Source of the DNA: Rebecca billardiae RCC1528
Lineage: Eukaryota; Protista; Haptophyta
Direction of reading: 5' to 3'
NCBI GenBank assembly: GCA_965240325.2
Contig: OZ251241.1
Coordinates: 372,001 to 436,000, forward strand
DNA length: 64,000 bases
A model generated the notes under the pieces. It saw nothing but the letters and a program-made list of their open reading frames with translations, was not told the origin of the DNA and ran no database searches. This document shows, in pieces, positions 7,344 to 64,000 of this stretch (within the stretch, counting starts at the first letter, position 1; every line of letters starts with the position of its first letter). Made by a program: the position numbers and the translations under genes.

Positions 7344-8495
7344 ATGAAAGCCGTGGCACGTATCGTGGCGGGCGCGCCGCCGGCGCAGCTGCCGGATGTG
7401 GTCTCTGACGTGCGCACGCTCGCCGGTGGCCACGTGTCGAAGGTCAATGCGGCTCTGCCGGGACTGATCGCCGAGCACGCGGCGCGTGAGTACACGCCCG
7501 TGCAGCTTCCTGGCAATGATGGCCGCCGCGCGCTGCTCACAGCGGAGGGGCTGCGCGAGGGTGAGCCGACGACCTTTTACGAGCCGGCGACGAGGCAGAT
7601 CATGCATGTTGACTTTGGCCTGTCGGGCGATAGGCTCCTCTCGGTGTGCAGCGGGCGCAACACTGCGTGCGCGGCGCCTCGCGAGCGGAGCGCATACGCG
7701 CTGCGCGCGCGCGCTTGTCACGAGTCACGAATCATGGTCTGGTCAACGTCGCCCCGTGCACACGCGTGCGCCGCGCGCAGGTGCCAGTATGCACGTCGCT
7801 GTCTCCGCTCCCGACGGCCGAGGCCGCCGCCCTCGGCCCGGCCGAGCCCGCGCGCGCCGCGCTCGAGTCGGCAATGCGCGCCTATGCGGCCGACGCGTAT
7901 CCGAGCGCCGTGCTCAGCGTGTATGGGCGCGTGGGCGAGGACGGTCGTGTGCGGGTGGTCGCGTGCCTCTCGGCGTGCGCGGCGAACCTGCCCAACTTCC
8001 ACGCCGGCGCGGTGCGCGCGCGCTGGGAGCTCGTCCTCCCGGCGGCCGGCGCCGGCCCCGACGCGCAGCTGAGCGGCGAGGTGAGCGCGCGCGTGCACTA
8101 CTTTGAGGATGGCAACGCGCAGCTCGACGCGCGCGAGAGCTGGAGCGTCGCGCTGCCGCTCGGCGGGGAGGGCGCGGATGCGCTCGACGTGCTCGCGCTA
8201 AACGCAGTCGCGCGCGTGAAGCAGGTGCGCGCGCGCGCTCGCCGCGCCGGCCCCTCGCGAGCCACGGCTGCACGATGCCAGCCCCGACCGCCCAGCACGC
8301 AACGCGCGATCGCAACGCGCGCAGGCGGAGGGCGAGTGGCACGCCTCGCTGCTCGACCGGTTCAGGTCGCTCAGCGACGGCGGTATCAAGGCGCTCCGCC
8401 GGCCGCTGCCCATGACCAAGACCAAGTTTGAGTTCGAGAAGGTGGCGCAGCACAGGCTCTCGGATCAGCTGGCAAACATGCGCGTGTCATCGTGA
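7344..8495 (+). CDS. CAPZA: F-actin capping protein alpha subunit (3 exons: 7344-7643, 7781-8224, 8325-8495)
   Basis: GAPPAQLPDVVSDVRTL, FYEP, NFHAGAVRARW, RVHYFEDGNAQL and KALRRPLPMTKTKFEFEKV match CapZ alpha. GT-AG introns restore frame. Confidence 0.88.
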
Positions 8496-8762
8496 TCGTG
8501 ACCGGCGCGCTTTGATCATTGACATTGTCTCACAATCACATTCTGAGATGTCGTCTCTTAGTAGTCGTCTCTCACACGTTGACGTTGCCAGTGCGAGCGC
8601 ACACACGCATGGATAGTACGGCGGCACGGTTCTGGCTGACACCGTGGCACCGATCGACAGGGCGACAGTCCGACAGCCGTGACGCGGCGCTTCCCGTGCC
8701 CCCACCGCCTACGCGCCGCGGGACGCATTCAATTTCAGGAACTTCGGAGTTCGTGTCGTTAA

Positions 8763-10279
8763 GGTGGCACCTCTGGAAACAGACGGCGGGAGGCAAGATG
8801 GCGAAGAAACAGCCCCGGCGTCGCGCTCGCTCGAGGCTCGGAGGCCCGTGCGAGCCGGCGGGGGCTCGAGCGGCACGGGGCGCACGTCGGGCGGGCAGAC
8901 CATGCACGTGGGCCTTCCGAACCGCTCGCCTGACGGCCTCGCTCCGCCGCTTCTCGCGCTCGCGAGCTGTGTCCGTGCGCGCGCGGTGGGCGGGCGTCGC
9001 GCAGCTCGACGCGAGGCGTCCACGGCGGAGATTGGGCCCAGCTGGGCGCTCGAACGGCTTCGACGTGCGGGGCCGGTCATGTACGTGCGCGCGCGCGCGC
9101 CGGAGCCGTCCGGCAACCTTGTGGTTGTGCTGCGGGAACGACGTCACACCCGGGCGGCACTGCGAGGTTCTGCGCGGGCCCATGTGCATGCATGTGCGCG
9201 AGGCGTGCGTGGGCTCGCGATGGCGGGGCGCGTTGGTCGAAGCTGCGCCATGGTCGTCGACGCCGGCTAGGCGCCGACGGGCGCGCGCGGCGGTCCACTC
9301 GGGGCCACGCGGGCCGCCGGGAGCTCGTGCGCAGCCGCTCGGCCAGATAGGTGGCCCCGGCGGCAGTCTGAACGTTCGAGGTCAGCACTTCACATTTCGA
9401 TGAACTCCGCACCCCCGCTCGTGGTGGGCCACCATGCGGCGCACCAGGGGGTGCAAGCAAGCAGCCGTTTGGAGGGATCTGTACATAGGGTCCGAAAATA
9501 TTATCAGAAAATATCAAAATAAGGGCTTTTTCAAGGATTTTCCGTATTATTTTCGGACCCTATGTACAGATCCCTCCAAACGGCTGCTTGCTTGCACCCC
9601 CTGGTGCGCCGCATGGTGGCCCACCACGAGCGGGGGTGCGGAGTTCATCGAAATGTGAAGTGCTGACCTCGTTCAGACTGCCGCCGGGGCCACCTATCTG
9701 GCCGAGCGGCTGCGCACGAGCTCCCGGCGGCCCGCGTGGCCCCGAGTGGACCGCCGCGCGCGCCCGTCGGCGCCTAGCCGGCGTCGACGACCATGGCGCA
9801 GCTTCGACCAACGCGCCCCGCCATCGCGAGCCCACGCACGCCTCGCGCACATGCATGCACATGGGCCCGCGCAGAACCTCGCAGTGCCGCCCGGGTGTGA
9901 CGTCGTTCCCGCAGCACAACCACAAGGTTGCCGGACGGCTCCGGCGCGCGCGCGCGCACGTACATGACCGGCCCCGCACGTCGAAGCCGTTCGAGCGCCC
10001 AGCTGGGCCCAATCTCCGCCGTGGACGCCTCGCGTCGAGCTGCGCGACGCCCGCCCACCGCGCGCGCACGGACACAGCTCGCGAGCGCGAGAAGCGGCGG
10101 AGCGAGGCCGTCGGCGAGCGGTTCGGAAGGCCCACGTGCATGGTCTGCCCGCCCGACGTGCGCCCCGTGCCGCTCGAGCCCCCGTCGGCTCGCACGGACC
10201 TCCGAGCCTCGAGCGAGCGCGACGCCGGGGCTGTTTCTTCGCCATCTTGCCTCCCGCCGTCTGTTCCGGAGGTGCCACC
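8763..10279. mobile_element. Foldback non-autonomous DNA transposon with ~735-bp inverted arms and TTAA target duplication (Kolobok-like GG..CC ends)
   Basis: TTAA(8759-8762)+GGTGGCACC ... GGTGCCACC+TTAA(10280-10283). Arms about 8763-9500 and 9547-10279 are near-perfect reverse complements around an AT-rich spacer of about 46 bp. Confidence 0.85.
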
Positions 10280-10704
10280 TTAAATCATAGAATGGGTCAG
10301 CAGCGGAGTCGGTCTTTCGACATTCAATTTCGGCGTGGCGCGAAAGTTTTTTGCGGCGGTTGACGAGATGCTATCTGGCTTCTGCCGCTGATCATCCTGT
10401 TGTCCTGATTAATATGGGCTCTATAAACCGCACACAAACGCCAACCCACGCTACCCTCCATCGTATATCGGGGATGGCTCGCTTTTAGCTTGTCCTATGC
10501 TCGAAGTCTCGAAAAAGGCGCGTGCAACGGCCAACGGGACATGAATCTAATATAATGCGTTTGAATTTCTAACGATTCGCTACCGCACTTACGACTGAAA
10601 TACATCATCATCGCTATTTTTGCGCGCGCGCCCTGGCTGCCCAGGGTGGATCTCGCGCCCGCGTTGCCAGCTTGGGGCGTCGCCGCCGAGCAAGGTTGGT
10701 CGCA

Positions 10705-13319
10705 ATGTTCTGCTGCGCGGCGAAGAAGCCGCCTGCGCTCTCGGACCAGGAGAGCACCGACTGGCTCTCAATCCACTCTCGCGGGGGCTCGAACGGCCGT
10801 CGCCTTTCCGTCGGCCTCTTTCGCCTCACGCAAGAGCCGAACGAGGGCGATGGCATCATGGACGTGGTCCGCTACCCGATGTGGGTTATGCCCATCTCGG
10901 CGTTGCTCGAGCTCGACCTCACGCAGAAGCTGCCACCGCACCAGACCCTGCGGGAGCAGGGGCTCCTCCGCGTCTTCACGCCAGACACGGACGCAGGCCG
11001 CGTGCTCTTCGTCTCACACCAGGTTTGCGCACACCCCACGCGGTGCGCCGCCCACCCCGCACCGGCCTGGCAAGGGCTCAGCGCACCGATCCCGCCCCCC
11101 CCGCCCTCCGCCCGCAGTGGTGCGGCGTGAACCACCCGGACCCGTCAGGCGCCCAGTTCGCGCGCCTTCAGCGCGCTCTGGCGAAGCTGAAGACGGGCTC
11201 CATGGCGGTCAAGTCGCACCCGCAGCTGATCATCGGCGGCGGCGCCAAGTCCACTTCGGGCAGTGAGTGGAAGGCGGTGCTCTCCGACCCGACCACGTAC
11301 GTGTGGTACGACTTCTTCTCGGTGCGCGCGCGCCTGGGCCGCCACGGCGGCCCGCGGCGGCCCGCCCACGTCTGCTGCCCGCCCTTGACGCGGCGCTCAC
11401 GACGAGCGCCGCCCCCGCGGCGCGCGCGCGCGCGCGTGCGCTCGCAGGTGCCCCAGCCCTCGCACTCGGCCGACGCGAGCACGATCAAGGACATGAAGCA
11501 CGCCGTGTTCTCGATCCCGTTCTACATCACGCACTCGTGGCGGGTGCTGGTGCTCGCGCCCACCACCAAGCACCACGACGACGACGCGCAGGTGTGCGAC
11601 TACTGGTCGTGGATGGGGCGCGGCTGGTGCAGGCTCGAGGCGATCGTGCACGCGCTCGGCCCGCACGGCGGCGAGCCCTCGCTGCTCGTGCAGGGCGAGT
11701 CGGACGTGTGCTACCGCTCGCACTACGACTGCCTGCACCGGCCGGTGGGGGACGGCCAGTTCAGCGTGCCGGCGGACAAGCGCACGCTCGTTCCGGTCCT
11801 CGTGCGCACGCTCAAGCAGCGGCTGCAGCGGCTGCTGGACGAGGGCAACCTGTTCATGTACCGCTGGACGCGCGCCATGCGCCCCTACTTCCTGCGCGGG
11901 CTGCCCCTCGGCGAGCCCGACGTCGCGCGCCGCTTCCTCCACGCGGAGGAGGCCACGTGGGAGTCGTTCAAGGACGCGTACAAGTTCGAGTCCGCGCTGC
12001 AGGACGACCGGGGCTACACGCCGCTCACGTATGCGGTCATGTCCAACAACGTGGCCGTCGCGCGCGAGCTGCTCGCGCAGCACGGCGCGGACGTGCACGG
12101 CCGCACGCGCATCGTCGAGCGCTCCGACATCGGCAACCTGGGCGGCGACTCGCTGCTGGCCACGTGCATGCAGTCGAACGGCGGCGTGTTCGACCCGGCC
12201 GAGATGATCGCGCTGCTGCTCGAGCACGGCGCAGACCCGCTCGCCCTCTCGCCGCACTCGGGCAACTCGCTGCTGAACGAGGCGGCGATGTGGGGCAACG
12301 CGGAGACTCTGCGCGTGATGATTGAGCTCGAGCCTCGGCTGCTCACGCAGCAGCACTACCCGGCCGAGCTGCACCCGCCCTTCTACCACACGCCCGCGCT
12401 CGCGTGCGCAATCTGGGGGCAGCTCGAGCCTGTGCTCGTGCTGCGCGAGGCGGGCGCGGACTTCAGCGGCCTCGAGTTCATCGGCCACTCTGTCCTCCAC
12501 GCCGCGGCGCACTGGGGTGCGCGCGCGGGCGCGCGAGCGCCGTTGCTCGCCTGCGCGCCGCGCGAGCGCGCGAGCGCGCGCGCGCGCGTGCGTGCCCGTA
12601 CGCACCCTCGCGCGACTTGTCGCCGACGAGCTGTGCGTCGCACGGGCGCTGCCGCCGCGCGCGCCCGCGTGCGCCGCGCGCCGCGCCGTGCGCCGCCGCG
12701 CGCCGCAGGGTACGCGGACGTGCTGCGCGAGTTCCTGCACGAGCCGAGCGCGCTGGCTCACCTGGACGAGGTGGCGACGCCGCCCGTGAACGTGCACGGC
12801 AGGCTGAACGCGTTTGGCAACTTTTTGTACTACGTGCACCGCGGGCTGCACGCGGCCGGGCAGCGTGACAAGATGATCACCTTCATGGCGGACAGCGTGG
12901 GCGGCACGCCGCTGCACGGCGCCGTCTCCGGCGACAACATCCTGTGCGCCTCCCTGCTGCTCAGCGCCAAGGCGGACCCGGCCGTGCGCAACATCCACGG
13001 GGAGACGGCGCTCGAGCTGGCCGAGCGCATGGGGCTGAGCGACATGGCCGAGGTGCTGCGCAGCGAGGGGCGGCGGCGCAGCCTGCCCACGGACGACAAG
13101 CGCGGCGGCACGGACGTCGAGCACAGGCTCTCGCTGCCTGGCGGCGTCGTCGACCTCGACTTTGTGGCGAGGCGCGCGGCGGAGCGCGCGGCCACCAAGC
13201 GCGAGACCCGGGCGAGCACGCGGCGCGCGAGCTCTGGGCGCACGAGCAGTGTCGTCGCGCGGAGCGCGGGTAGGACGTCGACCCCGCGCAATACACGTAC
13301 TGCTAACATGCACACGTAG
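10705..13319 (+). CDS. HET-like-domain plus ankyrin-repeat protein (introns 11023-11117, 11322-11447, 12517-12708)
   Basis: Spliced N-half has LFVSHQW..HPDPSGAQ, VWYDFFSVPQ and WMGRGWCRLE, resembling HET-domain motifs. C-half has ankyrin repeats (GYTPLTYAV, GNSLLNEAA, GGTPLHGAV, GETALELA). Confidence 0.75.
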
Positions 13320-14116
13320 AATTAAACGCGCCACTTTGTGACTTTGTCTGCGCTGTCATCGGTGTGTAACAATCGTCATCATCCCGTGAGCGATAGTACG
13401 GTGATGATTCTGCTGTCAGACCTCCGCGACTACTCGGCCTGGCGGATCACACCGTCAGTCAGTCGGACCGGCGTCCCCGGACGTCGTCGGCCACTGGCCA
13501 GTCTCTGTCTGGCCACGCCCGTACGGCGTGAGCGCGTATTATAAGGCGCCACGACTAACCAGCGCATTATATTGGCGTTGGACAATATGGCTCTGTGCTG
13601 TTCTGAATCTGAGTTCGGCATCCGACGAGGACATGCATATATACAGGTTATCTAATATCTGAGGCGGAGGACGACTCACGGACTCGGATGCTATCAGCTG
13701 CTATGATGCGCGCGATTGCGACGGCCGGGCGCGGCCCGCGCCGCGCGCGGACAGGTGCCGGTCCAGACTGCCGCCTGGGCGGCGGCGGGTAGTACCGTGT
13801 CGGTTAGCACCGTTAGTTAGCAGGCACCTCTGCGGTCCGCCACTGCCGCCCGCGACGGCGCCACCGACACCGTCATCATTGAAGTACATGACTGCTATAG
13901 ACTTTCGTCAACATACGTGCTATGGGGCAAGGGCCTTGCACTGACTACATCACAGGAACTCCCGCTGGCCGCTTATTGATGCTGATGATGAATTGAATTC
14001 AGACGCCAGAATAAGACAGTCCGGAGATCGAACTGAAGGGTCCGGAGTTGTTCAACTACCGGGCCGGGACCGTGGGCCGTGGCCGGGCGCGGGTTCGTCG
14101 CGCGCTCGGCGGCGCG

Positions 14117-16891
14117 ATGAAGTTTGGTGCCAAGCTCGAGGTGGCGATCGAGTCGGAGTGGAAGGAGCACTACATGCGGTACGACACGCTCAAGAAGGCG
14201 CTGAAGCGCGTCGACGACGCGCTCGTCGCCGCCCTCAGTGCGGGCGCCGCAGTCGTCGTCGGCGCGGAATCGGCCGAGGCGGTGTCCGCAATGCTCGCGT
14301 TCGCAGAGTTCGAGGAGGCCTTCTTCAGCGCGCTCGACGCGGACCGCGAGCGGGTCGAGGCGTTCTACCACTCGCAGGTCAACTCGTTCGAGGAGGCGCT
14401 CATCGTCCTCGGCCGCCAGCTCGACGGGCTCGCCGCGGCGCCCGTCGGCAAGGGCAAGAAGGACTCGGCCGGCGCCGGAGGGCTCTCCGAGGCGGGGCGC
14501 GCCGGGCTGCGCGACGCGTCGATCGACACGTACCGGCGGCTGCAGCGGCTGCGCAACTACTGCATCCTCAACTTCACCGGCTTCGCCAAGATCCTCAAGA
14601 AGTACCGCAAGCGCGTGTACACGCCGCGCTGCGAGGCGGCTGACTCGGCGCGGCGCGCGGCGCTCACGCGGCGCATGTCGGCGTCGCCGTGGCGCCGCGC
14701 GTCGGAGACGATGCTCGGCAGCCCGCGCCGGACGGCGGAGTACGACTCCGCCGACGGCGAGCCAACCGCGCTCGCGCTTGCCGCGCCGCTCCTCAAGCAG
14801 CCCTCGGCGGGCATGGCCGGCCGCCGCCAGTCGGTGCCGGCGGAGGCGTCGATGGGGCTCGGAGCGGCGCGCGCCGCGCGCACCGCGGCGGTGGCGCAGG
14901 AGGAGGGCGGCGCGGAGTACCCCACGCCGCCGCGCGGCGCGGCGCACCCCATCACCCGCCCGCGCGCCGCCCCGGGCAGCACGAGCGACGACGCGGCCGG
15001 CGCGCCGCCGCCCATCCCCGATCCCTCGCGCTCGCACGAGCGCGCGGTCAGCCTCTCGAGCTTTGTGGCGATGGCGGAGGTGGAGGCGCTGATCGAGGAG
15101 CTCGAGCTGCGCTTCGCGCGCGCGTTCTGCGACGGCGAGATCCGCCTCGCCCGCGCCGCGCTCCTCGTGCGCAAGTCGGGCCGCGCGGTGAACTGGTTCC
15201 ACTTTGCGCGCGGCTTCAAGCTGGGACTGATGGCGCAGCTGGGCGTGTGGGTGCTGTGGTGCGTCGTGGTCGAGGTGCCCGCGGCGGCGCGCGCGGGGGG
15301 CGCGGCGGCGGCGGCGCTGAGCGCGTGGATGACGTGCGTCATGCCCGTCTACCGCGGCGCCGGCCTCCTCTCGCTCGCGCTCTGGGTGTGCGCGGGCTGC
15401 CTGGCCGCGCTCGAGCGCTCGCGCATCAACTACGCGTACCTCTTCGACCAGCCGAGGCTCTCGGCCAGCTCGGCGCGGATGTACGACGGCGCGGTGACGT
15501 TCACGATCGTCTCGCTGGGCTCGCTGCTGCTCTCGCTCAAGGCGATGGGCGGCACCCTCCCCGCGCTCGCGCGCGGCGGCGTCTTCCCGCTGCTCACCTT
15601 CCTGACCGTGCCGACTCTGCTGCTCTGGCCGCTCGCGCGCGCGCGGCTGCTCAGCCGCACGCTGCTCGCGCAGCTGCTCGCGGCGCCGTGCATGCACACG
15701 ACGTTCTTCGCGGCGTTCGTCGCGGACTGGCTCACCTCGCTCGCCAAGCCGCTCGTCGACCTGGCCTACGCCGGCTGCTACGCGCTCAGCGGCGAGTTCC
15801 TGCTGCCACTCGGCGCGCAGGGCGCGTGCGCTCGCTCGCAGCTGCTCGACCGCCTCGTGTACCCAGTCCTGCTCGTGCTGCCGTCCGCAATCCGGCTGGG
15901 GCAGTGCCTGCGCCAGTACTACGACTCGGGGCAGCGGCACCCGGCGCTGTGGAACGCGCTCAAGTACCTGATGACGCTCTCCGTCACCGGCCTCGGCGTC
16001 TTCCACAAGGAGTTCAGCCACCGCGCCGCGCACGCGTCCATCTCCCGATACCAATTCGCATGGCTGACTGTCTACTTCACGTCCGCGCTCTACTCGTTCG
16101 CGTGGGACGTGGCGATGGACTGGGGGCTGGGCGACTGTGCGCTCGCGCGCGCGCACGCGGCGGCGATCCGGAGCGAGCTGCTGCGCTCGCGCCGCGCGAG
16201 CGCGCTCTCGCGCGCGCCCAGCGACGGCTCGGCCGGCACGGCGAGCCCGGCGCCCGGCGGAAGCCCGCGCGCGCGCGCGCACGAGGCGGAGGGCGACGAG
16301 GTCGAGCGAGGCGGCGCGATCGGCGGCGGGCGCAAGCGCGACTCGCTGTCGTCCACCGCGTCGATCACGGACCTGGAGGAGGTGCGCGAGCGCGTGAAGC
16401 GCCGCTCGCTCCTCCTCGGGCACACGTCGAGCGCCGCCTTTGCCGCCGCCGAGAGCGCGCCGCCGTGCGGGCTGCGCGAGCAGCTGCTCTTCCGCGTGCC
16501 CGCCCTCTACTACCTCGCCATCTCGGCCGACCTGTTCGGCCGCTTTGTCTTCCTGTACACGCTCATCCCCGCCGGCGCGCACTTCGAGGTCGACCCGTGG
16601 TTCATCGCGCTCGGCCCGTTCGTCGCGTCGATCGAGCTGCTCCGCCGCGGCATGTGGTCGCTGCTGCGGCTCGAGAACCAGCAGCTCGGCCACGGCCCCG
16701 AGCGCACCTCCACCTCGGTCGACGCCATCCCGCTGCACTTTGACCAGGCGGACGGCGGCCGCGCGGCCTCGGCAGCGCCGCCGCCGCAGCAGTCGCCGCT
16801 CTCCATGGCGCTCGAGGTGGGCAGCTTCGCCGCGGTGGCGGCCGGCGTGCTCGCGTTCGCGTACTTCACGGGCCAGCGCCAGCAGCAGTAA
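14117..16891 (+). CDS. SPX-EXS domain phosphate exporter (XPR1/PHO1/SYG1 family)
   Basis: SPX motifs MKFGAKL..EWKEHYMRYDTLKK and LNFTGFAKILKKY. EXS motifs RINYAYLF, FVADWLTS, RLGQCLRQYYD, LWNALKY, YSFAWDVAMDWGL and ELLRRGMWSLLRLENQQL. Confidence 0.93.
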   Translation: MKFGAKLEVAIESEWKEHYMRYDTLKKALKRVDDALVAALSAGAAVVVGAESAEAVSAMLAFAEFEEAFFSALDADRERVEAFYHSQVNSFEEALIVLGRQLDGLAAAPVGKGKKDSAGAGGLSEAGRAGLRDASIDTYRRLQRLRNYCILNFTGFAKILKKYRKRVYTPRCEAADSARRAALTRRMSASPWRRASETMLGSPRRTAEYDSADGEPTALALAAPLLKQPSAGMAGRRQSVPAEASMGLGAARAARTAAVAQEEGGAEYPTPPRGAAHPITRPRAAPGSTSDDAAGAPPPIPDPSRSHERAVSLSSFVAMAEVEALIEELELRFARAFCDGEIRLARAALLVRKSGRAVNWFHFARGFKLGLMAQLGVWVLWCVVVEVPAAARAGGAAAAALSAWMTCVMPVYRGAGLLSLALWVCAGCLAALERSRINYAYLFDQPRLSASSARMYDGAVTFTIVSLGSLLLSLKAMGGTLPALARGGVFPLLTFLTVPTLLLWPLARARLLSRTLLAQLLAAPCMHTTFFAAFVADWLTSLAKPLVDLAYAGCYALSGEFLLPLGAQGACARSQLLDRLVYPVLLVLPSAIRLGQCLRQYYDSGQRHPALWNALKYLMTLSVTGLGVFHKEFSHRAAHASISRYQFAWLTVYFTSALYSFAWDVAMDWGLGDCALARAHAAAIRSELLRSRRASALSRAPSDGSAGTASPAPGGSPRARAHEAEGDEVERGGAIGGGRKRDSLSSTASITDLEEVRERVKRRSLLLGHTSSAAFAAAESAPPCGLREQLLFRVPALYYLAISADLFGRFVFLYTLIPAGAHFEVDPWFIALGPFVASIELLRRGMWSLLRLENQQLGHGPERTSTSVDAIPLHFDQADGGRAASAAPPPQQSPLSMALEVGSFAAVAAGVLAFAYFTGQRQQQ

Positions 16892-17041
16892 GCCATAGCT
16901 GGGGCTCCGCCGTGGGATCGTCTTTATCGAGAATTGAGATGACCGTTGATCCGTGACCGGATGATGTGGACGACGAACTGTCGTCGCGTGTATTATACAA
17001 GTAACTGCGTGCTGATATATATGATATATATATATATATAA

Positions 17042-19815
17042 TGTGGACGTTATTGATAGGGAATTCTAGCTATATATAATTATTAAAGTTCTGAGTGTCT
17101 ATGAGCGACGCCATTCGCCAAGAATCCGGCTCGCATGGCATTCCTGTGTTGTCCCGCGCGCACCGTCGCGCGCAGGAGTCGACTGGTCAGTCTGGTGCGC
17201 TGCCAATCTGGCCCACAGCGGCGCACCCGCAGCGGACTCGGTCGGTTACCGCTCATCGTAATTCGGATCGATCAGGCTTCGCTTTCGGGGCGCCATGGGG
17301 TTGCTCACGACGAAGGCGCCGAGCTGGGCGGGGGGATCGCCTGCATCGGGCACTGCCGGGTGCACTCTCCGCTGCAGGAGGTGCACCGCAGTCGCGCAGC
17401 CCCTCTGCTCGGTAAGGTCGCTGGCTGTCTGTGTGGCCCGGCTCCCCGCCTGATCGTTCAGGCGGCGCGACGACATCAGCATCTGTCCTCGCCGCGTCGC
17501 CCCTCATGCAATGGCCTCTTGCTCTCGCCGCTGTCGCGTCAACCCGCACGCTTCATCATCGTTTGCCCGCCCGCCCACCCTCGGCCTCTGGCGGAATATG
17601 GAATGGGTTCCATACGTACGTGCACTGCAGTGAGTCAGCGAGCCATCAGCCTTAATCGACCTTGCTCAGTGACTGACGACTCGCGGGCGCCCTCTCGACC
17701 TCGGGCAGCAGCTCAACCGCCACGCCGCTGCCAGCGCCCGCTGTCGTTCGTTGCTCAAATCCCAACATAGCTAACCTGATCGTTCCATCGGATCATCGTG
17801 GAGACGTGGTCGTCTACTCTCCACGACTAGGTGGGCCCACTGGCCACTGTGGGATTATAGTGACGCAGAGCGCGAGCTCATAGCGCGATGTTTACTTTCG
17901 TCTCGAGCTGGATTCCAGCCCCAGGAGATGGCCCCTGGCCTGCCTGGTTAAAAAACCCGAGTGGTACATGCTGTAAATATAGGGAGTAACGGTGGTCCTG
18001 TTTACTTATTGGAAATGGCCTGTGACCAATGTAACGGCCATGTAACGGGCGTCTTAAACGTGATATATAGGGTCGATAGACGTCACTTTGATATAGCACT
18101 TTGATGAGCTGATCATAGGTCTTCAGCAGCATGCACACCCATTGTCACATATACGGCGTATATGGGCACTGTGAGAATACGGGATAACGGCCGTTACACC
18201 CGTGCGTTACATATACACCGCCATGCTGATCAGCATGGCTGCCATAGTATTTCAGACTGTTTCAGACTGCTCTCGTAGCAGCCGTACGGCGTGCATGTGA
18301 CACCTAAGAATTTTTCCAACCCTTCTACCCTCGAAGGATGAGTCTTAAGGAGCCGTGGGCAAAGATTGAGCCGCACCGAGTCGCGGCGCCAGCCCGCCCG
18401 CCGTGGTCAAGGCAAGCAGGAGTGGTGCACGCGGCGCCGGGCCCATCCAGCAGCCCGCAGCGTAAACACGGCGGACAAGGTTCGTCGAGAGCTCATCTGT
18501 GGCGTTCAAGGCAGGCACTGCTATGCATCGAACGCCTATTCTCATGCCCCGACCTAACCGTTGCTCTACACTGCGACCAAGCTGTGTCCGAGCTGTCCTC
18601 AGCTTGACCGTCCTTTGCCTAACTGTGCGCAACGGCCGCTTCGTCGCAGCGCCGAGCTGGCTCGCCGTGGTGCGCGCGCGCGCGTAGCGATGTGCACTCA
18701 TCACCGCTTCCTGCGTGGCAGCAGGGCGAGACATGGCTCGCAGGTAAGCTGATACGCCTGCTGACCGTGCACCGGCGTCGGCGGCGCCACCAACGTCCTC
18801 GGGCAGGCTCACGAAGGGCTCAAATCACTGGTGAACGCATCAACTGTACTGTCCGCAGCGAGCACGGCGCACAGCGGATGACCAAGCAGAGGCGGGGCGA
18901 CTGCTGTGCGGCCGCGCGGGGGGAGTAGCTGGGCTCTTGAGGTACGCGTAGAGCCACGACAGGGCTCAACAAGCGCATCAGCTGCGATCTACCCGGCTTG
19001 ACGCGCAGCCCGACCTCGTGCAATCGTGTGGCTCGAGGCCCTCCAAGGGGCTCGTAGCTTCCAAACACCTGAGGTGCGTCGGCACTGAGAGTTGAGTCGA
19101 GGCCGGGGAGGTAACAGACGGCACACGCATCCACTTTGACCGCTGTTTGACCATCAGATCCTTCCCCAAGTGCCCACGATCATGTGAATAGCCACAGCGT
19201 TCGGTCACACCGCGCAGACTTCCGGGGACCTGACCGACGAGGCGGGTCTCCGCAGGGCCACAGAAGTAGCTGGGCCTTGCCAGGATACCATGCATATGCT
19301 GTCCGAGTAACGCTCCGGAGTGTCCGAGTTGATTCGAGTGCGTCCCAAGCTCGCGTTGTGCACGCATTACAATCCTCAAAGCTGTTCCGGTGTTTGAACG
19401 CGCGACTGTCGGCGAGAGATGGCGGACCGGGAAGATGACCCAGGGATGAACCGTTCGCATGGCTCGTTTCAGAGGGCTACGCAGTATGCCACGGGCGTGC
19501 GGCGCAGCGTGCCTCGCATGGTAGGCGGGCAAGCGCGGCGGACAACGCGCTGACGACGCGCACAGGTCGATCCCGGTCATCGTTTTCGCGAGCGACCGGC
19601 TTCCCGGACCGGGAGTTTGGCGGCCTGGAAAAAAGGGACTTCAGCGCGAGAAAAAGAGCACGGCTGCGGTCCGAAAAAGCCAGAGAGATTGTGTTTTCAT
19701 TTTTAAATGGCTGTGGGCCCACCTACCACGACGCCGCGCGCCGCGATCATCCAGCTCCAAAGTCCAGTCGTACCCGACGCCTTGTACGAGCCGGGCATGG
19801 CGGAGTGGCTAGACA
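17042..19815. mobile_element. Family A element copy 2 (inverted relative to 3108-3978), in (TA)n, interrupted by a nested insertion
   Basis: 17042-17827 and 19726-19815 are reverse-complement homologous to 3108-3978. Ends TGTGGAC / GCTAGACA, with TA tracts on both sides. Confidence 0.75.
17828..19725. mobile_element. TIR DNA transposon (13-bp TIR TAGGTGGGCCCAC, 7-bp target duplication CCACGAC), no recognisable transposase
   Basis: CCACGAC at 17821-17827 and 19726-19732 flanks perfect inverted ends. The empty site is visible in copy 1 near 3190. Confidence 0.82.
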
Positions 19816-20336
<521 letters not shown>

Positions 20337-21836
20337 TATATATAAATCGTCGCGTCTGCAATAGTGTCGGACTGATGAATGAATGAACCATAGTGACACT
20401 GTCAGTGACATACAGCAGATGACGACACGGGCTGTCAACGGTGGCATCACAGGCTGCGTCGTCACCCGACCGGTAAATATTACGGCCGCGGCCGCGGGCG
20501 CGGTTCATTTGCAGCCGCGCTCGGATCACGATTCACGGTGATCTATAGGCGCCTAACGGCGCAGGCATCAGGCCTGTTTGATTTCTACCAGATTTCATTT
20601 ACTATGTCACGGCGACAAACCCGTGCCCGCCAGTGGGAATCGGTGTCACGCCCCGATCGGGGACGCAAAGGCTCCGGCGGGAAGCCGAGACGCACGACTC
20701 CGAGGGCCACGGTGCACTCAGCGAGGAGTGATGAGTGCACCAATCTAGCTCCAGTGTCGCTGCTCCCAGCCGTTGAGGAGGAGTTGCGTCCCCGAGCAAG
20801 GCACCATGGGTCGCTCCAGGACTCTCCGCGCGCTCGCGCCTGCGCGGCGAGCGCGCTTGCAGGCTTGTTCTCATCATCTTAGCCAAGACTGCAGCCTGCC
20901 AAATGCGCGATGACGCGTGCGTACGCCTTTCGGCGTGTCATGGGTGCGTGTGGCACGCACCGTGTCGTAGTCTACGCCGAGGAGGCTTGACAATCCGGCC
21001 AGCCGACCTGCCGCGATCACGTTTAAATGCAGGCGGCAGGCTGCATGCGAGCGCACGCAACGGAAGCATCTCAAGCTCGACAAGGTAGTGGCGGCGGAGC
21101 GTGTAGAGCTGGTTTCGATGGCAGACTGTCTTTCTATCAACCGGCCTTGGTCGTTACATGGCACGGGCTGGACGCAGCCAACACAGAGTGCTTGCAGCTT
21201 GCAGCAGGCCCGCCGCCGCCGACTTCGCGCCGCGGCTCGTCGCGCACGTGCGCCGCGAGTAACCCCTGTGTCAAGGCGAAACACCTCGGCAAGTCGAAGC
21301 AGCATGTCTTGGTAACGTCTTTCGCCGCAGCTCAGCGTCTTAGTACGAGGATTTGCCAACGACGTGCCGCGGGGCCGCCAAGCTACTCTTGCACTACCGC
21401 CGGCAGCCGCACCAGCGGGCTGAAGCCGCCATTTTAGCATTTTACCGCGCGTTTTCGCTCCTCGTACGTAGAATTAAAAACAGGCCGGCCATCAGTTATT
21501 AATCGAAAAAACCGCGTCGTAGTAGCTAATAAGTACATTACGTCGTCCGGCTGGCTGTCATCGGCGGCGTGGCCACTCGGCCGTCGGGCCTCCGATGATA
21601 GGGCACAGGCACTAGTTAGTCACTCACAGGCTGGGCCCCGCCGACTCGCCGAGCGTCGTTGCGGTTGGACTCCGTCGCAACAGTCACTCGCAGCCGCTCT
21701 TGCGTCACGGAGCCATCGCCGCCCGCGGCCCGCACGAGCAGCGTGCCCGCGCTCCGACGAGACTGCACAGGGCAGCGGGGCCAGGCAATGGCGACAGCTG
21801 AGCTGCACAGGTCACGCCAGCGAGAGCGTTCGCCGT

Positions 21837-36851: not shown

Positions 36852-36951
36852 NNNNNNNNNNNNNNNNNNNNNNNNNNNNNNNNNNNNNNNNNNNNNNNNN
36901 NNNNNNNNNNNNNNNNNNNNNNNNNNNNNNNNNNNNNNNNNNNNNNNNNNN
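36852..36951. other. Assembly gap (100 N)
   Basis: Run of N. Confidence 1.
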
Positions 36952-58002: not shown

Positions 58003-58956
58003 ATGGCTGACGCGCTCGAGGGTGGCGCGTATGATGTCATCGCCTCGTTTCCCGACGGCCTGCCCGAGGACGCGCTGCAAGTGGAGTGCGGTCCTGAGCA
58101 CGACCGCAAGCCTGCTGCGGAGAGCGACGAGTCGCTCCTCGAAGCCACATGGCGCGCGCGTGTGGCCGCCAACCCTGCTCTCTTCAACGGCACCAAATTT
58201 CGCTTTGCGGGCGTGCGTGCGCGCACAGAGGCGGGTGTGGGGCCGACGCTGCTCCTCGGCCTGACCGACTACCGGTCCTTCCTGGGCACGAACTGCGCGC
58301 CCCACTGGGAGCGGCTGCTCGCTGCCTCCGCCGGTCACCTCGCGTCGCCCTTGGGCAACGCGGCGGTGGTGGAGACGGCAGATAGGCGCGTCGTGCTCCT
58401 ACGGCGAGGTGCCGGTGTGGGCGAGGCGCCCAACAGCGTAGTCATGCCCGGTGGCCATCCGGAGCCGGAGATGCTTGGCGTGCGCAGCCTCGGCGACTGG
58501 GGGCAGCACGAGCCCGCAGCCTTCGCCGTGCGGCTCGCCGCCACCGAGGGCGCGGCGGCTGATAGCGCGCCGCCAGCGCCCCTGAGCTGGCCGGCCGCGG
58601 TGCGTCGGGAGCTGTGGGAGGGCATGGCGCGCGAAATCGAGGAGGAGACGGGCGTGCCTCGAGCGGCGCTTGGTCCGCTGCGCTGCATCGGCTTCTGCCG
58701 CCGCGTGCTCAACCACCGGCCGGACATCATCTTCCACGTGCGCTGCGCGCTCACGGCCTCTGAGGTGGCGGCGCACTATGCCGGCAGCCAGGACGGCAGC
58801 GCGCACCGCGACGAGTCCACCGCGCTCTTCACGCTCGAGCGGCACGAGCTCGTGCGCCGGGCGCTCGACGCGAACGACCTGCCCATGCCCGGATGCCATC
58901 GCGGTGGCGTGCACCTCTACCGCGAGCATCTCGCCGCGGCGTCGTCCTCCTCGTGA
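58003..58956 (+). CDS. Nudix hydrolase, NUDT22/AtNUDT9-like (UDP-sugar pyrophosphatase family)
   Basis: LFNGTKFR, LGLTDYRSFLGTN, HLASPLGNAAVVETAD, VLLRR, PGGHPEP and REIEEETG. Confidence 0.88.
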   Translation: MADALEGGAYDVIASFPDGLPEDALQVECGPEHDRKPAAESDESLLEATWRARVAANPALFNGTKFRFAGVRARTEAGVGPTLLLGLTDYRSFLGTNCAPHWERLLAASAGHLASPLGNAAVVETADRRVVLLRRGAGVGEAPNSVVMPGGHPEPEMLGVRSLGDWGQHEPAAFAVRLAATEGAAADSAPPAPLSWPAAVRRELWEGMAREIEEETGVPRAALGPLRCIGFCRRVLNHRPDIIFHVRCALTASEVAAHYAGSQDGSAHRDESTALFTLERHELVRRALDANDLPMPGCHRGGVHLYREHLAAASSSS

Positions 58957-59499
58957 CAGAGGAGGTCTTGGCGGCGGGCGGCCAGGCGCCCGCCAGATCG
59001 CGTCGACTGTTAGCTGCGCGGCTGAAGCGCGCAGGCCGATGCTAAGGCCGAGGCGCGCGACCAGCTCAACCGGGGACACGGCGTTACAGCGTAACCGGGG
59101 ACACGGCGTTACAGTTTGCGGGAGTCGCAGCGCGCACGCGCGGATGCCGGGGCGCAGCACGCGCGACTGCGTGACTATCACTTAATGTCGTCAGGTAACC
59201 TGTTACGCTCCGACCCCTGACGAGGCCCTGGCCCGCTGAGTCGGTTGCCAGGCGGCTCAGGGCTGTCCCGCGCGCCCCTGGCATGTCCGCGTACCAACGG
59301 CCTCAATTAGGTGGGAGGCGCACGTTGACGTCCGGGCGTGAGTGGAACTTCGCGTGGGCCGCCGGACTTCGCTTGTACTGAGATTTGGGGCTGAGCTCAA
59401 CGGCGCCGGCATCGTGCGTGGTCGGCCCTTGCATCAGCGTCGGCGCCGTCTCCCTCGCGCCGCGCGTGCGTGCAGTCGCTCGCGGGCGGGGCGCCACAC

Positions 59500-59623
59500 A
59501 TGTCCAGCAACCTATACAGCCGGAGTGGCGTGCCGGTGCGAGCGATGGACCCGGAGCGTGCGACCATGCTGCCGCACGACGATGAAGACACCAAGCCGCG
59601 CCGCTCGATGTCGGGCGGCGCCA

Positions 59624-59661
<38 letters not shown>

Positions 59662-62600
59662 GGCGGCGGCGGTGGCGCGCGCGCGACATCGTACGTGATC
59701 GTCCTCCTCGTCGGCGTGATCATGGTGCTCGGCTTCTCCCTCGCGCGCCGCAGCCCCGTCGTCGAGATCCGGTCGGCCGCCGAGCCGGCCGCGTGCCACT
59801 GCCCCGAGCCGCCGGCGCCCGTGCTCGCGGCGGTGGCCGATCAGACGCCGACGCCGACTCCGGAGGCGACGAAGCCCCCGCGCATCTTCAAGAAGCGCCC
59901 GCTGCAGCCCAAGACCATCGAGAGCGTGCTCATCACCGGCGCGGCCGGCTTCATCGGCTCGCACTTTGCGCTGCTGCTGCTCGACGCGGGTGGCTACAAG
60001 GTGACGGCGATCGACGACATGTCGCGCTCGTCGTGGGACACGGTGATCCGGCTGCGAGCGCTGGGCGAGCGCGCCGCGGCGAAGGGCAGCAGCCTCGAGT
60101 TCGTCAAGCAGGTGCGCGCCGCCGCGCACGCCGCGCGAGCGGCCGCGCGCCGCCACGCGCGCCGCGCCGGCACTGAGGGGCGGCGCCCTCCCTGGCCCCT
60201 GGCGCGGGCACAGGACCTCGCGGACACGCCGGCGATGGCGACGCTGATGCGCAACCGCGGCATCGACGCGGTGGTGCACTTTGCGGGCAACGCGTACGTC
60301 GGCGAGTCGATGCGCTCGCCGGACAAGTACTACCAGAACATTACTATTGGCACGCTCAGCCTGCTGCAGGTGCGTGCGCGGCGCGCAGCCCGCCGCGAGG
60401 GCGCGCGCTGCGTGCGGCGCGGGGTCCGATGCGCGCGGCGCGGCGCGCTCACGGCCCGCTGCCCCCTTCGCCGCCCCGCGCGCGCAGGCCATGGACCAGG
60501 CGGGCGTGCAGAACCTGATCTTTTCGTCCTCGTGCGCCACATATGGCGAGCCTGAGGAGTTCCCGATCACGGAGGACACGCCGCAGGTGAGGGACGGGGG
60601 CGCGCGGGGGGCGGAGCGCGCGAGGAAGCATCGGGGAGGGGGCGGCGTGGGCAGGCGCGCGGCGCGGGCGGCGTGCGCGCGCGGCGCGGGTGGGGGGCGT
60701 GGCGCCGGGCCGCGGCAGCGACTGCTGCCGTCGTCCCCGTCGTCCCTCAGCGCGGCCTGGCCTGCCCTCGGCTGAGCCCGCGACGCCCGCCCGCCTCGGC
60801 GCGCCGCCGCGGCTTGGACGCACGCCCCGCGCGCGCCCGGCGCCCGCGCGCAGAAACCGACCAACCCGTACGGCCTGTCCAAGCTGCACGCGGAGCAGGC
60901 GATCCTTGCAAAGTCGGGCGTGCGGCGCAAGCAGGGTGGTCGGCTCGCCGTCGCGTCTCTGCGCTACTTCAACGTGATCGGCGCGGACCCGCACGGGCGG
61001 ATGGGCCCGGTGCTCAACCACCGCGAGCAGTGGGAGTACCCGCGCATCGTCGACGCGGCGATGGACGCCGCGCTCGGGCTGCGCGACAAGCTCAAGATCA
61101 TGGGCAACCAGTTCCCCACCTCGGACGGCACCGCCGTGCGCGACTACATTCACGTGTCAGACCTCGTGCAGGCGCACCTCGACGTGCTGCTCCGGCTCGA
61201 CGCGGCCGAGCCGCTCGTGTACAACGTGGGCGTGGGGCGGGGGTACACCGTCAACGTGCGCCGCACCACGCCGCCGCGCGCGCCGCGCGCGCCGCCGCGC
61301 CGCGCTGGGCGCTCGAGGCTGAGTCTCCCGCGCGCTCGCGCTCGCCCGCCCGCGCGCGTGTCGTCGCCGCGCCGCGCCGCGCGTGCGCAGGAGGTGAAGG
61401 CGGTGGTGGAGCAGGTGGCGGGCAAGCGCGTGCCGTCCGAGATCGGCCCTCCGCGCGCGGGAGATCCGCACACGCTGTACGCCGACCCGAGCAAGATCAT
61501 GACCGAGCTCGGCTGGAAGCCCAAGGTGCGGCGGACGAGGCGGCGCGCGGCGCGGCGCGCGGCGCGCGGGCGCGGGGGCGCGGCGCGCGGGCACGACGGC
61601 GGCGCCGCGCCGAGCCGAGCGCGCGGCCACTCCGCCCGACTGAGAGCACCGGCGGCCCCGGCGCGCCGTGCCGCGTGTGCGCCGCCGCGCCGCCCTCCGC
61701 CCGCACCCGCCGCGCAGTTCGCCGACCTCAAGCTCGCGATCGAGACTTCCTGGCGGTGGCGCATCAACCGGTACCCCAGAGGGGGCAGCGTCTCGCGCAT
61801 CGACCCGCTGGCCTACTCGGGTGCGGCGCGCGCGCGCGCGCGTGGGCGCGGATGCGCGCGCGTGGCGGGCGCGCGGGCTCCGCGCCGCGCCCGCGCCGCT
61901 TCGCGCTCACGCGCGGCTGGCCCGCCCTGCGCCTCTCCGCGCGCGCGCACGCCTGCGCGCACGCCTGCACGCGCGCCCGTGCGCGCGCCTCCGCGCGCGC
62001 GCAGGCCCCGCGTATGTGTACGAGACGGACGTCTCGCCGCGGCTGCCCGACGACCCGCGCATCGTGATCGTCGGCGCGGGCCCCACCGGCCTGTGCGCCG
62101 CGTACCGGCTCAAGGAGCTGGGGTACACCAACTGGCAGCTCATCGACAAGGGCAAGAGCGCGGGCGGCCTGGCCACGTCCATCACCGACCCGAAGGGCTT
62201 CACGTGGGACATCGGCGTGCACGTGCTCTTCTCGCACTTCGCCTTCTTCGACGCGCTGCTCGACGAGCACCTCGAGCCGAAGCAGTGGCTGTACCACCAG
62301 CGCTGGTCGCCCGCGTGGATGCGCAACCGGTGCGCGCGCCGCCGCGCGCCGCCGCGCGCGCCGCCGCCCGGCCGCGCGCCGCCGTCGGCGCCGCGGCGCG
62401 CGCTGAGCGCGGTGGTGCCCCGCTGCCATCGGCGCGGCGCTGTGTGTGTGCGCGCGCGCGCGCGCGCGGCACCAGCTGGGTGGGCTACCCGATCCAGGCG
62501 AACGTGTGGCGGCTGCCCGAGGAGGAGGTGGCGGAGATCCTCACTGACCTCTCGCAGCTCAAGCCCGACCCGACGGCACAGCCCCGCAACTTTCTTGAGT

Positions 62601-64000
62601 GGTGCGGCGCGCGCGCTGCGAAGGAGCGTGCGGCGCACGCGCGCGCGCACACACGCGCGAGACGGTGACGCGCGCGCGCGTGCGCGCCCCCCTGCCCCGC
62701 GCGCGGCTGCCAGGCTGCACAACGGCTTCGGCAAGGCGCTGACCAAGACGTTCATGGCGCCATACAACTTCAAGGTGTGGGCACACCCGCCCGAGCAGCT
62801 CAACACGATCTGGGTGGGCGAGCGCGTCGCGACGATCAAGTTCCAGGACATTCTGAGCAACGTGATCGCGCGCAAGGTGCGCGGCGCGGCACGCCCGCGC
62901 GCCGCGCCAACCGCCGCGCCCGCCCGCGCCCTGCTCACGAGCGCGCCGCGCGCGTGCGGCCGCGCCCCGCTCGCTGCTGCGCCCGTGCCTGCGCTGCGCC
63001 CTCGCTCCGTGCGCCGCAGGACGCGCCGGCGTGGGGCCCGAACGCGCAGTTCCGGTACCCGATGAACGGCACAGGCCACATCTGGGAGGCGGTCTTCAAG
63101 ACGCTGCCGTGGGAGAACATCCGGATGGGCGCCGAGATGTCGACGGTGCACGCGCCGCCCGCGGCCGAGGGCGTGGCGACGCCGCGCGCGGGCGAGAAGG
63201 GCGCGCGCCACATCAAGCTGGCCGACGGCTCGTCCATCGAGTTCGACGCGCTCGTGAGCACCGTGCCCGTCGACCGGCTGCTCAAGAGTGGATTCCCCGA
63301 CGACCCCGTCATGCCCAAGCTCGCCGAGGGCGACGACAAGTTCAAGCACCAGGTGAGGCCGCGCGCGCCCTGCCGGGGCCCGGCGCGCTGCGGGCGCCCA
63401 GCGCCGCATGTGTCGCGAGTGCCGCCTGCGCGGTCTCGCGCCTCGCGGCGTGCACGGCTGTGGGCGCGGCCACGCGCCGGGCGAGGCTCGGCTCGCGCCG
63501 CCGCGCGGCGCGCCCCGCGCTCACGCCCCCGGCCCGCGCCCGCCCGTGCGCCCCCTGTGCCGCGCAGACCGTCAACTTGGTGGGCGTGGGCATCGCCGGC
63601 CAGCCGCCCGCCAAGCTGAACGGCGTGCACTGGGTCTACTTCCCCGAGGAGGAGTTCCCCTTCTACCGCGTGACGGTGCTCTCCAACTTCTCACCGCTCG
63701 TCGTGCCCAAGCCGTTCGAGCAGTGGTCGCTGCTCGTCGAGGTCTCCGAGTCCAAGTGCGCGGCGGCTGCGCGCACGGCGCCGCGCGCCGCGCACGGCGC
63801 GCGAGGCCGCGCGCGCCACGCGGCGCGGTAGCGGTGCCGGCCTCACCCCGCGGCCGCCGCCGCCGCCCCGCGCCACCTCGACGGGCGCAGGTACCGCGAG
63901 GTGCCCAAGAGCGCGGCCGAGCTCGAGCAGAAGGTGGTCGACGGGCTGCGCCGCGCGACGATGCTGCCGGCTGACGCGCAGATTGACTCCGTCTGGTAAG
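59500..64000 (+). CDS. Membrane-anchored UDP-sugar 4-epimerase (UXE/MUR4-like) fused to eukaryotic UDP-galactopyranose mutase; 3' end outside the window
   Basis: Introns 60112-60213, 60370-60487, 60587-60853, 61256-61390, 61526-61717, 61821-62004, 62330-62475, 62602-62713, 62877-63019, 63353-63567 and 63756-63890 give one frame. TM YVIVLLVGVIMVLGFSLA. Epimerase: TGAAGFIGSH, HFAGNAYVGES, SSSCATYGEP, YGLSK, LRYFNVIG, DGTAVRDYIHV. Mutase: GAGPTG, GFTWDIGVHVLFSH, PYNFKVWA, WVGERVA, WGPNAQFRYP, WVYFPE..FPFYRVTVLSNFSP, WSLLVEVSES. Confidence 0.9.

Follow-up and report, generated by a model that had tools for sequence, protein, structure and literature searches.

Does a single gene of a haptophyte encode two consecutive enzymes of nucleotide-sugar metabolism, and if so, which furanose sugar would the protein make and on which side of a membrane? 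This question is raised by a gene of Rebecca billardiae RCC1528 that lies at the end of the stretch analyzed here (contig OZ251241.1, positions 372,001 to 436,000; 64 kb, 69% G+C; "the window," whose positions are used throughout). The gene is on the + strand at 59500–63995, is intron-rich, and has 12 exons in the window. An earlier note had described it as a membrane-anchored epimerase-mutase fusion, and our analysis agrees that one gene encodes an anchored GalE-family epimerase followed by a eukaryotic-type UDP-galactopyranose mutase (UGM), with a junction and a linker that are conserved in relatives.

The epimerase and the mutase share one reading frame

The 12-exon model was built from three-frame translations and splice motifs. 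In this model, exon 6 ends with ..DPLAYS and the first base of a further codon (G at 61820), and it is followed directly by the splice donor GT at 61821–61822. The intron that joins the two domains (intron 6, 61821–62004, + strand, GTGCGGCG..GCGCGCAG) is 184 nt long, is in phase 1, and ends with the acceptor AG at 62003–62004; its donor octamer, GTGCGGCG, recurs at introns 5 and 8. The first bases of exon 7, which begins at 62005 (GC CCC GCG TAT..), complete a Gly codon, so that the join reads ..LAYSGPAYVYETDVSPRLPDDPRIVIVGAGPTG in frame and the protein runs on past this Gly as PAYVYETDVSPRLPDDPRIVIVGAGPTG. The peptide formed by the join, YSGPAY, matches the sequence of relatives.

Without removal of intron 6, the frame of the epimerase would stay open for 316 codons from the start of exon 6, to a stop at ∼62666, and no Met is present in the frame of exon 7 among the 120 codons ahead of the GxGxxG motif of the mutase. 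The epimerase therefore lacks a stop codon of its own and the mutase a start codon of its own; the earlier note had made both claims, and its 61820|62005 junction proved exact to the base. Because exon 7 aligns to the UGM of Trypanosoma cruzi from residue 10 of the latter, we take the 16-residue stretch ahead of this match to be a linker between the two enzymes.

Identity of the two enzymes

A Pfam scan of the window exons placed the Epimerase family (PF01370) on exons 1 and 4. The GxxGxxG Rossmann motif for NAD binding is present in exon 1 (GAAGFIGSH), the catalytic-Ser block FSSSCATYG was identified from the gene model in exon 3, and the YxxxK sequence of exon 4, PYGLSKL, is in register with PYGKSKL of Escherichia coli GalE. 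When exon 4 was used as a query, the best 32 matches in the PDB were all UDP-Glc/Gal 4-epimerases, and the epimerase domain of Prymnesium parvum, which is 55% identical to that of the window, matched 8WXK over its full length (3e-72). By family, the N-terminal enzyme is a true GalE. It shares with the UDP-glucose 4-epimerases of E. coli (1UDC) and human (1EK5) an extended short-chain dehydrogenase/reductase (SDR) fold, the GxxGxxG motif, the Ser and YxxxK residues, and similarity over the full length, but it adds an N-terminal tail, a transmembrane helix, and a Pro-rich stem, and it continues without a stop into the mutase.

The same order of anchor, stem, and GalE-family domain is found in plant MUR4/UXE, a type II UDP-Xyl 4-epimerase of the Golgi. 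However, the window epimerase is no closer to this protein (43–45% identity to MUR4-like proteins of mosses and ferns) than to bacterial GalE and a Klebsormidium "UDP-glucose 4-epimerase" (42–46%). The blocks AYVGES, CATYGEP, and LRYFNVIG, which had been put forward as shared with plant MUR4, are indeed present, but at least the LRYFN-type block is also found in E. coli GalE and is thus not a signature of that plant enzyme. Yeast Gal10p (PDB 1Z45, an epimerase-mutarotase that is among the GalE matches) likewise joins a GalE domain to a second enzyme of the galactose pathway; its partner, in contrast, is an aldose 1-epimerase and not a flavin mutase, and Gal10p is soluble and catabolic.

Exon 7 matched the Pfam families NAD_binding_8 and Amino_oxidase. 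In an alignment of 137 UGM homologs, the window protein has the consensus at the FAD (flavin adenine dinucleotide) motif, the His of the His loop, PYNFKVW, the Arg of GERVA, the Asn of GPN, W.YFPE, and the Arg of FYR, and all near-invariant positions visible in the window are kept. The FAD motif reads IVGAGPTG and the His loop GVHVLFSH, with a His that is conserved in 134 of the 137 homologs; the UGM domain of a relative matched T. cruzi 4DSG with an E value of 3e-91. The second enzyme is a eukaryotic-type UGM, orthodox in its visible residues, and is predicted to have mutase activity. It belongs to the same family as the UGMs (GLF/UGM) of Aspergillus fumigatus (3UKA/3UTE) and T. cruzi (4DSG) and keeps their substrate Arg, Asn, Trp, and Tyr positions. 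Unlike these stand-alone, soluble proteins, it has no start of its own, is placed behind an epimerase and a membrane anchor, and has Phe for the Tyr of the SNY motif; in relatives of the window gene, the UGM is in addition followed by a third domain that resembles glycosyltransferases of the GT-A fold. The C-terminal substrate-binding segment of the UGM (EYGYP.., RGRFGSWKYEVGNQDH) is present in relatives, and in the window gene it is expected past base 64000.

Proposed reaction and the evidence against it

We propose that the gene encodes a protein with a single-pass anchor in which a GalE-family, NAD-dependent epimerase is joined by the conserved 16-residue linker to a flavin-dependent UGM, and that this protein makes UDP-galactofuranose (UDP-Galf) at a membrane; we give this reading a probability of about 0.65. 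The epimerase domain would turn UDP-Glc into UDP-galactopyranose (UDP-Galp), and the adjacent mutase would then contract the ring to yield UDP-Galf. Tethering at the membrane would keep the scarce furanose donor local to a consumer of Galf, possibly the third domain or a partner transferase. Because the equilibrium of UGM lies far on the pyranose side, co-localized supply and consumption would be a sensible reason for such a fusion.

Several observations weigh against this proposal. The last ∼100 residues of the UGM, the substrate-binding ones included, lie beyond the window, as does the third domain. The RNA of this organism is represented by one small run, which gave only 20–33-nt chance matches in GC-rich sequence and is evidence neither way, and a search of metagenome and transcript contigs with a codon-degenerate form of the spliced junction, LAYSGPAYVY(D/E), gave 0 matches, the nearest relatives there being 71% identical. 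The Tyr of the SNY motif (Tyr in 107 and Phe in 15 of the 137 UGMs) is replaced by Phe in the window protein and in the clade of fused proteins; a literature search on the role of UGM Tyr334 (Y334) returned no relevant paper, and we do not argue a hexose or pentose preference from this position. In the third domain, the polar positions that are canonical for its Pfam family, PF11913 (N, GRE, H, HY..ER), are replaced in six haptophyte-type sequences, with the hydrophobic core kept. The residues that flank the window anchor are ambiguous as to its orientation, with one Lys or Arg before the helix and three after it. Finally, eukaryotic UGMs require reduced FAD, usually obtained via NAD(P)H, which would be awkward in the Golgi lumen.

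Topology of the predicted protein

A Kyte-Doolittle scan identified a hydrophobic helix at residues 64–82 (SYVIVLLVGVIMVLGFSLA, 59689–59745, + strand; mean value 2.5), which is predicted to be the membrane anchor. It is preceded by a tail of 63 residues with a poly-Gly run and followed by a Pro/Thr-rich stem. The poly-Gly run arises from a GGC/GGT repeat at 59615–59678 that places 17 Gly before the anchor and is absent from the relatives aligned. A comparable N-terminal hydrophobic segment is present in a transcript-like contig of a relative (L001), in six of eight haptophyte proteins scanned, and in two euglenid relatives.

In most relatives, the flank on the N-terminal side of the helix is the more positive one (an R-W-P motif precedes the helix) and the C-terminal flank is neutral or acidic, which predicts an N-in/C-out, or type II, protein. 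The type II layout proposed by the earlier note is therefore supported as far as the helix and the Pro-rich stem are concerned, whereas the lumenal side of the catalytic domains, plausible by analogy and from the flank charges of relatives, is one toward which we lean only slightly.

One alternative is a fused protein whose catalytic domains are on the cytosolic face of an endomembrane, from which UDP-Galf would be imported by a transporter, as in fungi. The larger number of Lys and Arg residues after the window helix would fit this arrangement, but most relatives have the opposite distribution of charge, with a positive N-flank and a neutral or acidic C-flank. The NAD(P)H reducing equivalents of UGM are cytosolic, as are the known eukaryotic UGMs; on the other hand, the analogous plant MUR4 is lumenal, and the C-terminal GT-A-like domain suits a lumenal site of glycosylation. 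We regard a cytosolic orientation as possible rather than probable.

Predicted substrates

The earlier note had offered two routes for a protein of this kind, from UDP-Xyl to UDP-L-arabinofuranose (UDP-Araf) or from UDP-Glc to UDP-Galf. Of these, the hexose route, UDP-Glc to UDP-Galp to UDP-Galf, is probably the one used. We favor it because the epimerase is as near to GalE as to MUR4, the best matches of solved structure are UDP-Glc/Gal 4-epimerases, and the UGM is orthodox; the substrates themselves are inferred from these likenesses.

Action of the same fused protein on pentoses, from UDP-Xyl to UDP-L-arabinopyranose by UXE activity and on to UDP-L-Araf, appears unlikely. In its favor, the anchor and stem have a type II-like layout similar to that of plant MUR4/UXE, and plant "UDP-arabinose 4-epimerase" proteins are among the named near matches (43–45% identity); nevertheless, bacterial GalE and the Klebsormidium enzyme are equally near (42–46%), and the best matches of solved structure are all UDP-Glc/Gal 4-epimerases. 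Similarly, the Phe that replaces a widely conserved Tyr in the fused UGM clade could mark altered sugar recognition, and some UGMs weakly interconvert UDP-arabinose forms, but the mutase retains every other near-invariant UGM residue, and we know of no dedicated UDP-arabinose mutase of the UGM family in eukaryotes. Plants make UDP-Araf with RGP mutases, which are unrelated to UGM. The text of a study that bears on the prymnesin sugars (PMC2857367) does not state their ring forms and is not used as support.

The fusion is found in relatives of the window gene

Among named relatives, Pavlovales sp. CCMP2436 has the best match to the epimerase (70% identity to exon 4). In this genome, one exon encodes ..DPLAYAGPAYTTETDDTPAVRDDPR, the next exon opens with ILIVGAGPTG in frame, and the junction itself has no intron; the exons for the epimerase, the UGM, and a DUF3431-like domain follow one another in this order on one strand. 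The junction peptide YSGPAY of the window thus has counterparts in YAGPAY of Pavlovales, encoded by a single exon, and in HSGPAF of transcript L001. The public annotation of the Pavlovales orthologue (MU631435.1; 8001–14690 of our locus L004) divides it between a 433-amino acid "hypothetical protein," whose end is encoded by intron sequence, and an 89-amino acid fragment. The first of these models itself reads over the junction, and the true gene appears to cover at least 8133–21366 of the locus.

Three intron-poor contigs of 4.1 kb from JGI samples (L001–L003), which are transcript-like, carry the anchor, epimerase, UGM, and C-terminal domain on one molecule. The frame of all three, although they are from different samples, is broken only by a shared stretch of ∼100 nt (GTAAGC..CAG, at ∼760–870) inside the epimerase; the dominant isoform may retain an intron here, or splicing of this stretch may be regulated.

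A protein search sized for long proteins recovered full-length fused forms of 1,142–1,230 amino acids, among them an Emiliania huxleyi UniRef entry, P. parvum AB1Y20_001196, a complete MMETSP open reading frame (ORF), and many environmental clusters. The annotated protein of the window gene itself was absent from the protein collections searched. The window model is 54–58% identical to the full-length relatives over ∼790–860 residues, and these alignments are colinear and undisturbed at the exon borders. We also tested 40 related environmental loci. A single ORF or exon encodes both the epimerase and UGM in at least 14 of these, and in L012, L015, and L016 an unbroken ORF of 1,157–1,220 amino acids covers all three domains.

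This comparative evidence is strong and comes from independent sources, and the window gene is very likely a true fusion. That two separate genes were mis-joined in the model, with an epimerase mRNA that ends in "intron 6" and a mutase transcribed alone, is very improbable: the one small RNA run of this organism gave only chance matches and NCBI splits the Pavlovales orthologue into two models, but the unspliced frame has no stop for 316 codons from the start of exon 6, no in-frame ATG precedes the FAD motif, the split Pavlovales model crosses a junction that is inside one exon, and the fused form is found in transcripts and uninterrupted ORFs of many relatives. The window gene represents the pavlovophytes in a family of conserved haptophyte proteins of ∼1,150–1,230 amino acids.

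A GT-A-like domain follows the mutase in relatives

In relatives, the UGM is followed by ∼280 residues that match Pfam DUF3431 (PF11913) at 25.8 bits (threshold 25). This third domain is present in all full-length relatives and colinear downstream in Pavlovales sp.; in the window gene, it would lie past the end of the window. The two-domain architecture described by the earlier note is therefore accurate for the epimerase and UGM and incomplete for the family.

An AlphaFold2 model of the third domain of a haptophyte relative (pLDDT 82, pTM 0.81) had structure matches only among GT-A glycosyltransferases (ArnC, UGGT, SpsA, B3GalT5, and the A. fumigatus Galf-transferase GfsA). The Foldseek probability was up to 1.0 (0.99–1.00 for the best dozen), and the VIA Z score was up to 11.6 over 170–190 residues. 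The domain models as a divergent DUF3431 of GT-A fold, with at most a putative transferase activity. It scores at the threshold of the Pfam family, and the canonical polar motifs are gone from the haptophyte branch; because of this loss, the haptophyte domain is perhaps non-catalytic.

In each of the eight UGM homologs of ∼650–750 amino acids tested, a canonical DUF3431 domain comes after the UGM. The UGM-DUF3431 arrangement is recurrent (P0193, P0206, P0212, P0228, P0233, P0236, P0239, P0245, P0147, and P0141), and P0141 has the order UGM-GT90-DUF3431. Such fusions form a Rosetta-stone link of DUF3431 to UDP-Galf and provide a functional lead for PF11913.

Distribution of fused UGM proteins

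In a tree of UGM sequences, the window protein groups with the haptophyte-type fused proteins P0002 and P0121 (SH-aLRT 96). This group is within a fully supported clade that also contains SDR-UGM proteins of the euglenids Ploeotia vitrea and Euglena longa and proteins of the reverse order, UGM-epimerase. Fusions of an SDR domain and UGM were seen in both orders, in P0124, P0126, and P0422 of euglenids and in P0127/P0271, P0153, and P0420. A gene of the reverse order, a 3.6-kb ORF without introns, lies on a 386-kb contig that also carries kinase, WD40, SH3, and GYF genes and looks eukaryotic. In Carpediemonas membranifera (KAG9393200.1, 1551 amino acids; P0122), two near-identical UGM domains are placed either side of a DUF707 domain.

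We considered the euglenid fusions as orthologues of the haptophyte protein in their SDR part and rejected this assignment, as their SDR domains are closest to 8RDG and dTDP-glucose dehydratases and are not of the GalE type. In the SDR part, the euglenid fusions are thus analogous and not orthologous. The distribution suggests that an SDR sugar enzyme has been coupled to UGM repeatedly and independently. UDP-Galf is reportedly part of the nucleotide-sugar pool of Euglena gracilis (PMC5745450), so donors of this kind exist in a group with analogous fusions. Within haptophytes, the RmlC/D fusion of P. parvum (PMC6556577) is a precedent for the fusion of consecutive nucleotide-sugar enzymes; it differs from the window protein in that it belongs to the NDP-rhamnose pathway and has no membrane anchor, and the paper that reports it includes neither a mutase nor furanose sugars.

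Literature searches outside the subscription journals, which covered the fusion, bifunctional epimerase/UGM proteins, DUF3431, and the UGMs of haptophytes and Euglena, found no paper on the epimerase-UGM architecture or on the function of DUF3431. The suggestion that this architecture is undescribed is consistent with that result, but the architecture is shared with other genomes: the proteins of E. huxleyi, P. parvum, and MMETSP are fused, and euglenids have analogous ones. Public databases already list full-length fusions, with generic names, and the family is apparently uncharacterized.

Implications for UDP-Galf supply

Galactofuranose has important roles in fungi, trypanosomatids, bacteria, and some algae and is, to our knowledge, absent from vertebrates and plants. 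In the eukaryotes studied to date, a soluble cytosolic mutase makes UDP-Galf, which is then imported into the Golgi. A conserved, anchored epimerase-mutase that in relatives also includes a GT-A-like domain suggests that UDP-Galf supply can be organized otherwise and more compactly, and the fusion offers a direct handle on where algal scale and surface glycans gain furanose sugars. The recurrent UGM-DUF3431 arrangement likewise suggests a first function that could be put to the test for DUF3431, an uncharacterized domain of many fungi and protists.

A broader and more speculative proposal, which we think doubtful as it stands, is that haptophytes, and by analogy euglenids, have a route from UDP-Glc to Galf-glycans on one type II polypeptide of the Golgi lumen, in which DUF3431 domains would be furanosyltransferases or domains that handle UDP-Galf. 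If this were true, UDP-Galf would be synthesized in the lumen and no UDP-Galf transporter would be needed, and DUF3431, widespread in fungi and protists, would be an unrecognized family of furanosyltransferases or UDP-Galf-handling proteins.

Exon structure and surroundings of the gene

All exons are on the + strand. Exon 1 (59500–60111) contains the start ATG, the poly-Gly tail, the transmembrane helix, the Pro-rich stem, and the start of the epimerase at GAAGFIGSH; its Pfam Epimerase/GDP_Man_Dehyd match covers residues 143–192, and it is colinear with P0403, P0400, and P0398. Exon 2 (60214–60369; ..HFAGNAYVGES..) was placed by its GT-AG borders and alignment to relatives, and splice borders and alignment likewise defined exon 3 (60488–60586), with the catalytic-Ser region FSSSCATYGEP, and exon 5 (61391–61525), which encodes the C-terminal domain of the epimerase. 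Exon 4 (60854–61255), with PYGLSKL and LRYFNVIG, matches Pfam Epimerase at 4e-14 and residues 145–268 of E. coli GalE (E value 4e-20). The end of the epimerase in exon 6 (61718–61820) was set by the reading frame and the splice donor.

In exon 7 (62005–62329), the 16-residue linker is followed by the FAD-binding fold of the UGM (IVIVGAGPTG) and the His loop, with matches to Pfam NAD_binding_8 (6e-13) and to residues 10–97 of the T. cruzi UGM (E value 9e-25). Splice borders together with alignment to relatives or other UGMs placed exon 8 (62476–62601), exon 9 (62714–62876; PYNFKVW and VGERVA), and exon 11 (63568–63755; WVYFPE and FYRVTVLSNFSP). Exon 10 (63020–63352; WGPNAQFRYP) matches residues 201–275 of the A. 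fumigatus UGM (E value 2e-8) and has a 13-residue insertion compared with relatives.

Exon 12 (63891–63995) ends with ..IDSV and the bases TG, followed by GTAAG (TG|GTAAG at 63995|63996), so that the gene is incomplete in the window, ∼100 UGM residues short of the end of the domain. Because relatives continue with W(S/D)KRLEYGYPVPY.. at the same position, the GTAAG at 63996 is best read as a splice donor of a gene that runs past the window, in preference to a TGG-TAA stop.

All 11 introns have GT..AG borders, with GTGCG donors in nine, GTGAGG donors in two, and CAG acceptors throughout. The exons are 69% GC, with values of 0.66, 0.47, and 0.95 at the first, second, and third codon positions, and this strong codon periodicity is a clear coding signature; the introns are 87% GC, with values of 84–90% among the 11.

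Elsewhere in the window, 100 N at 36852–36951 mark an assembly gap. Directly upstream of the fusion gene and on the same strand is an ORF of 317 amino acids (58003–58956, +) with a weak NUDIX match (23 bits; cutoff 21.1). Some NUDIX enzymes hydrolyze nucleotide sugars, and this neighbor, marginal as its match is, may be meaningful. A 22-nt direct repeat (AACCGGGGACACGGCGTTACAG) is present twice at 59068–59114, 25 nt from start to start and ∼400 nt upstream of the start codon, and might be part of a promoter or have arisen by a small duplication.

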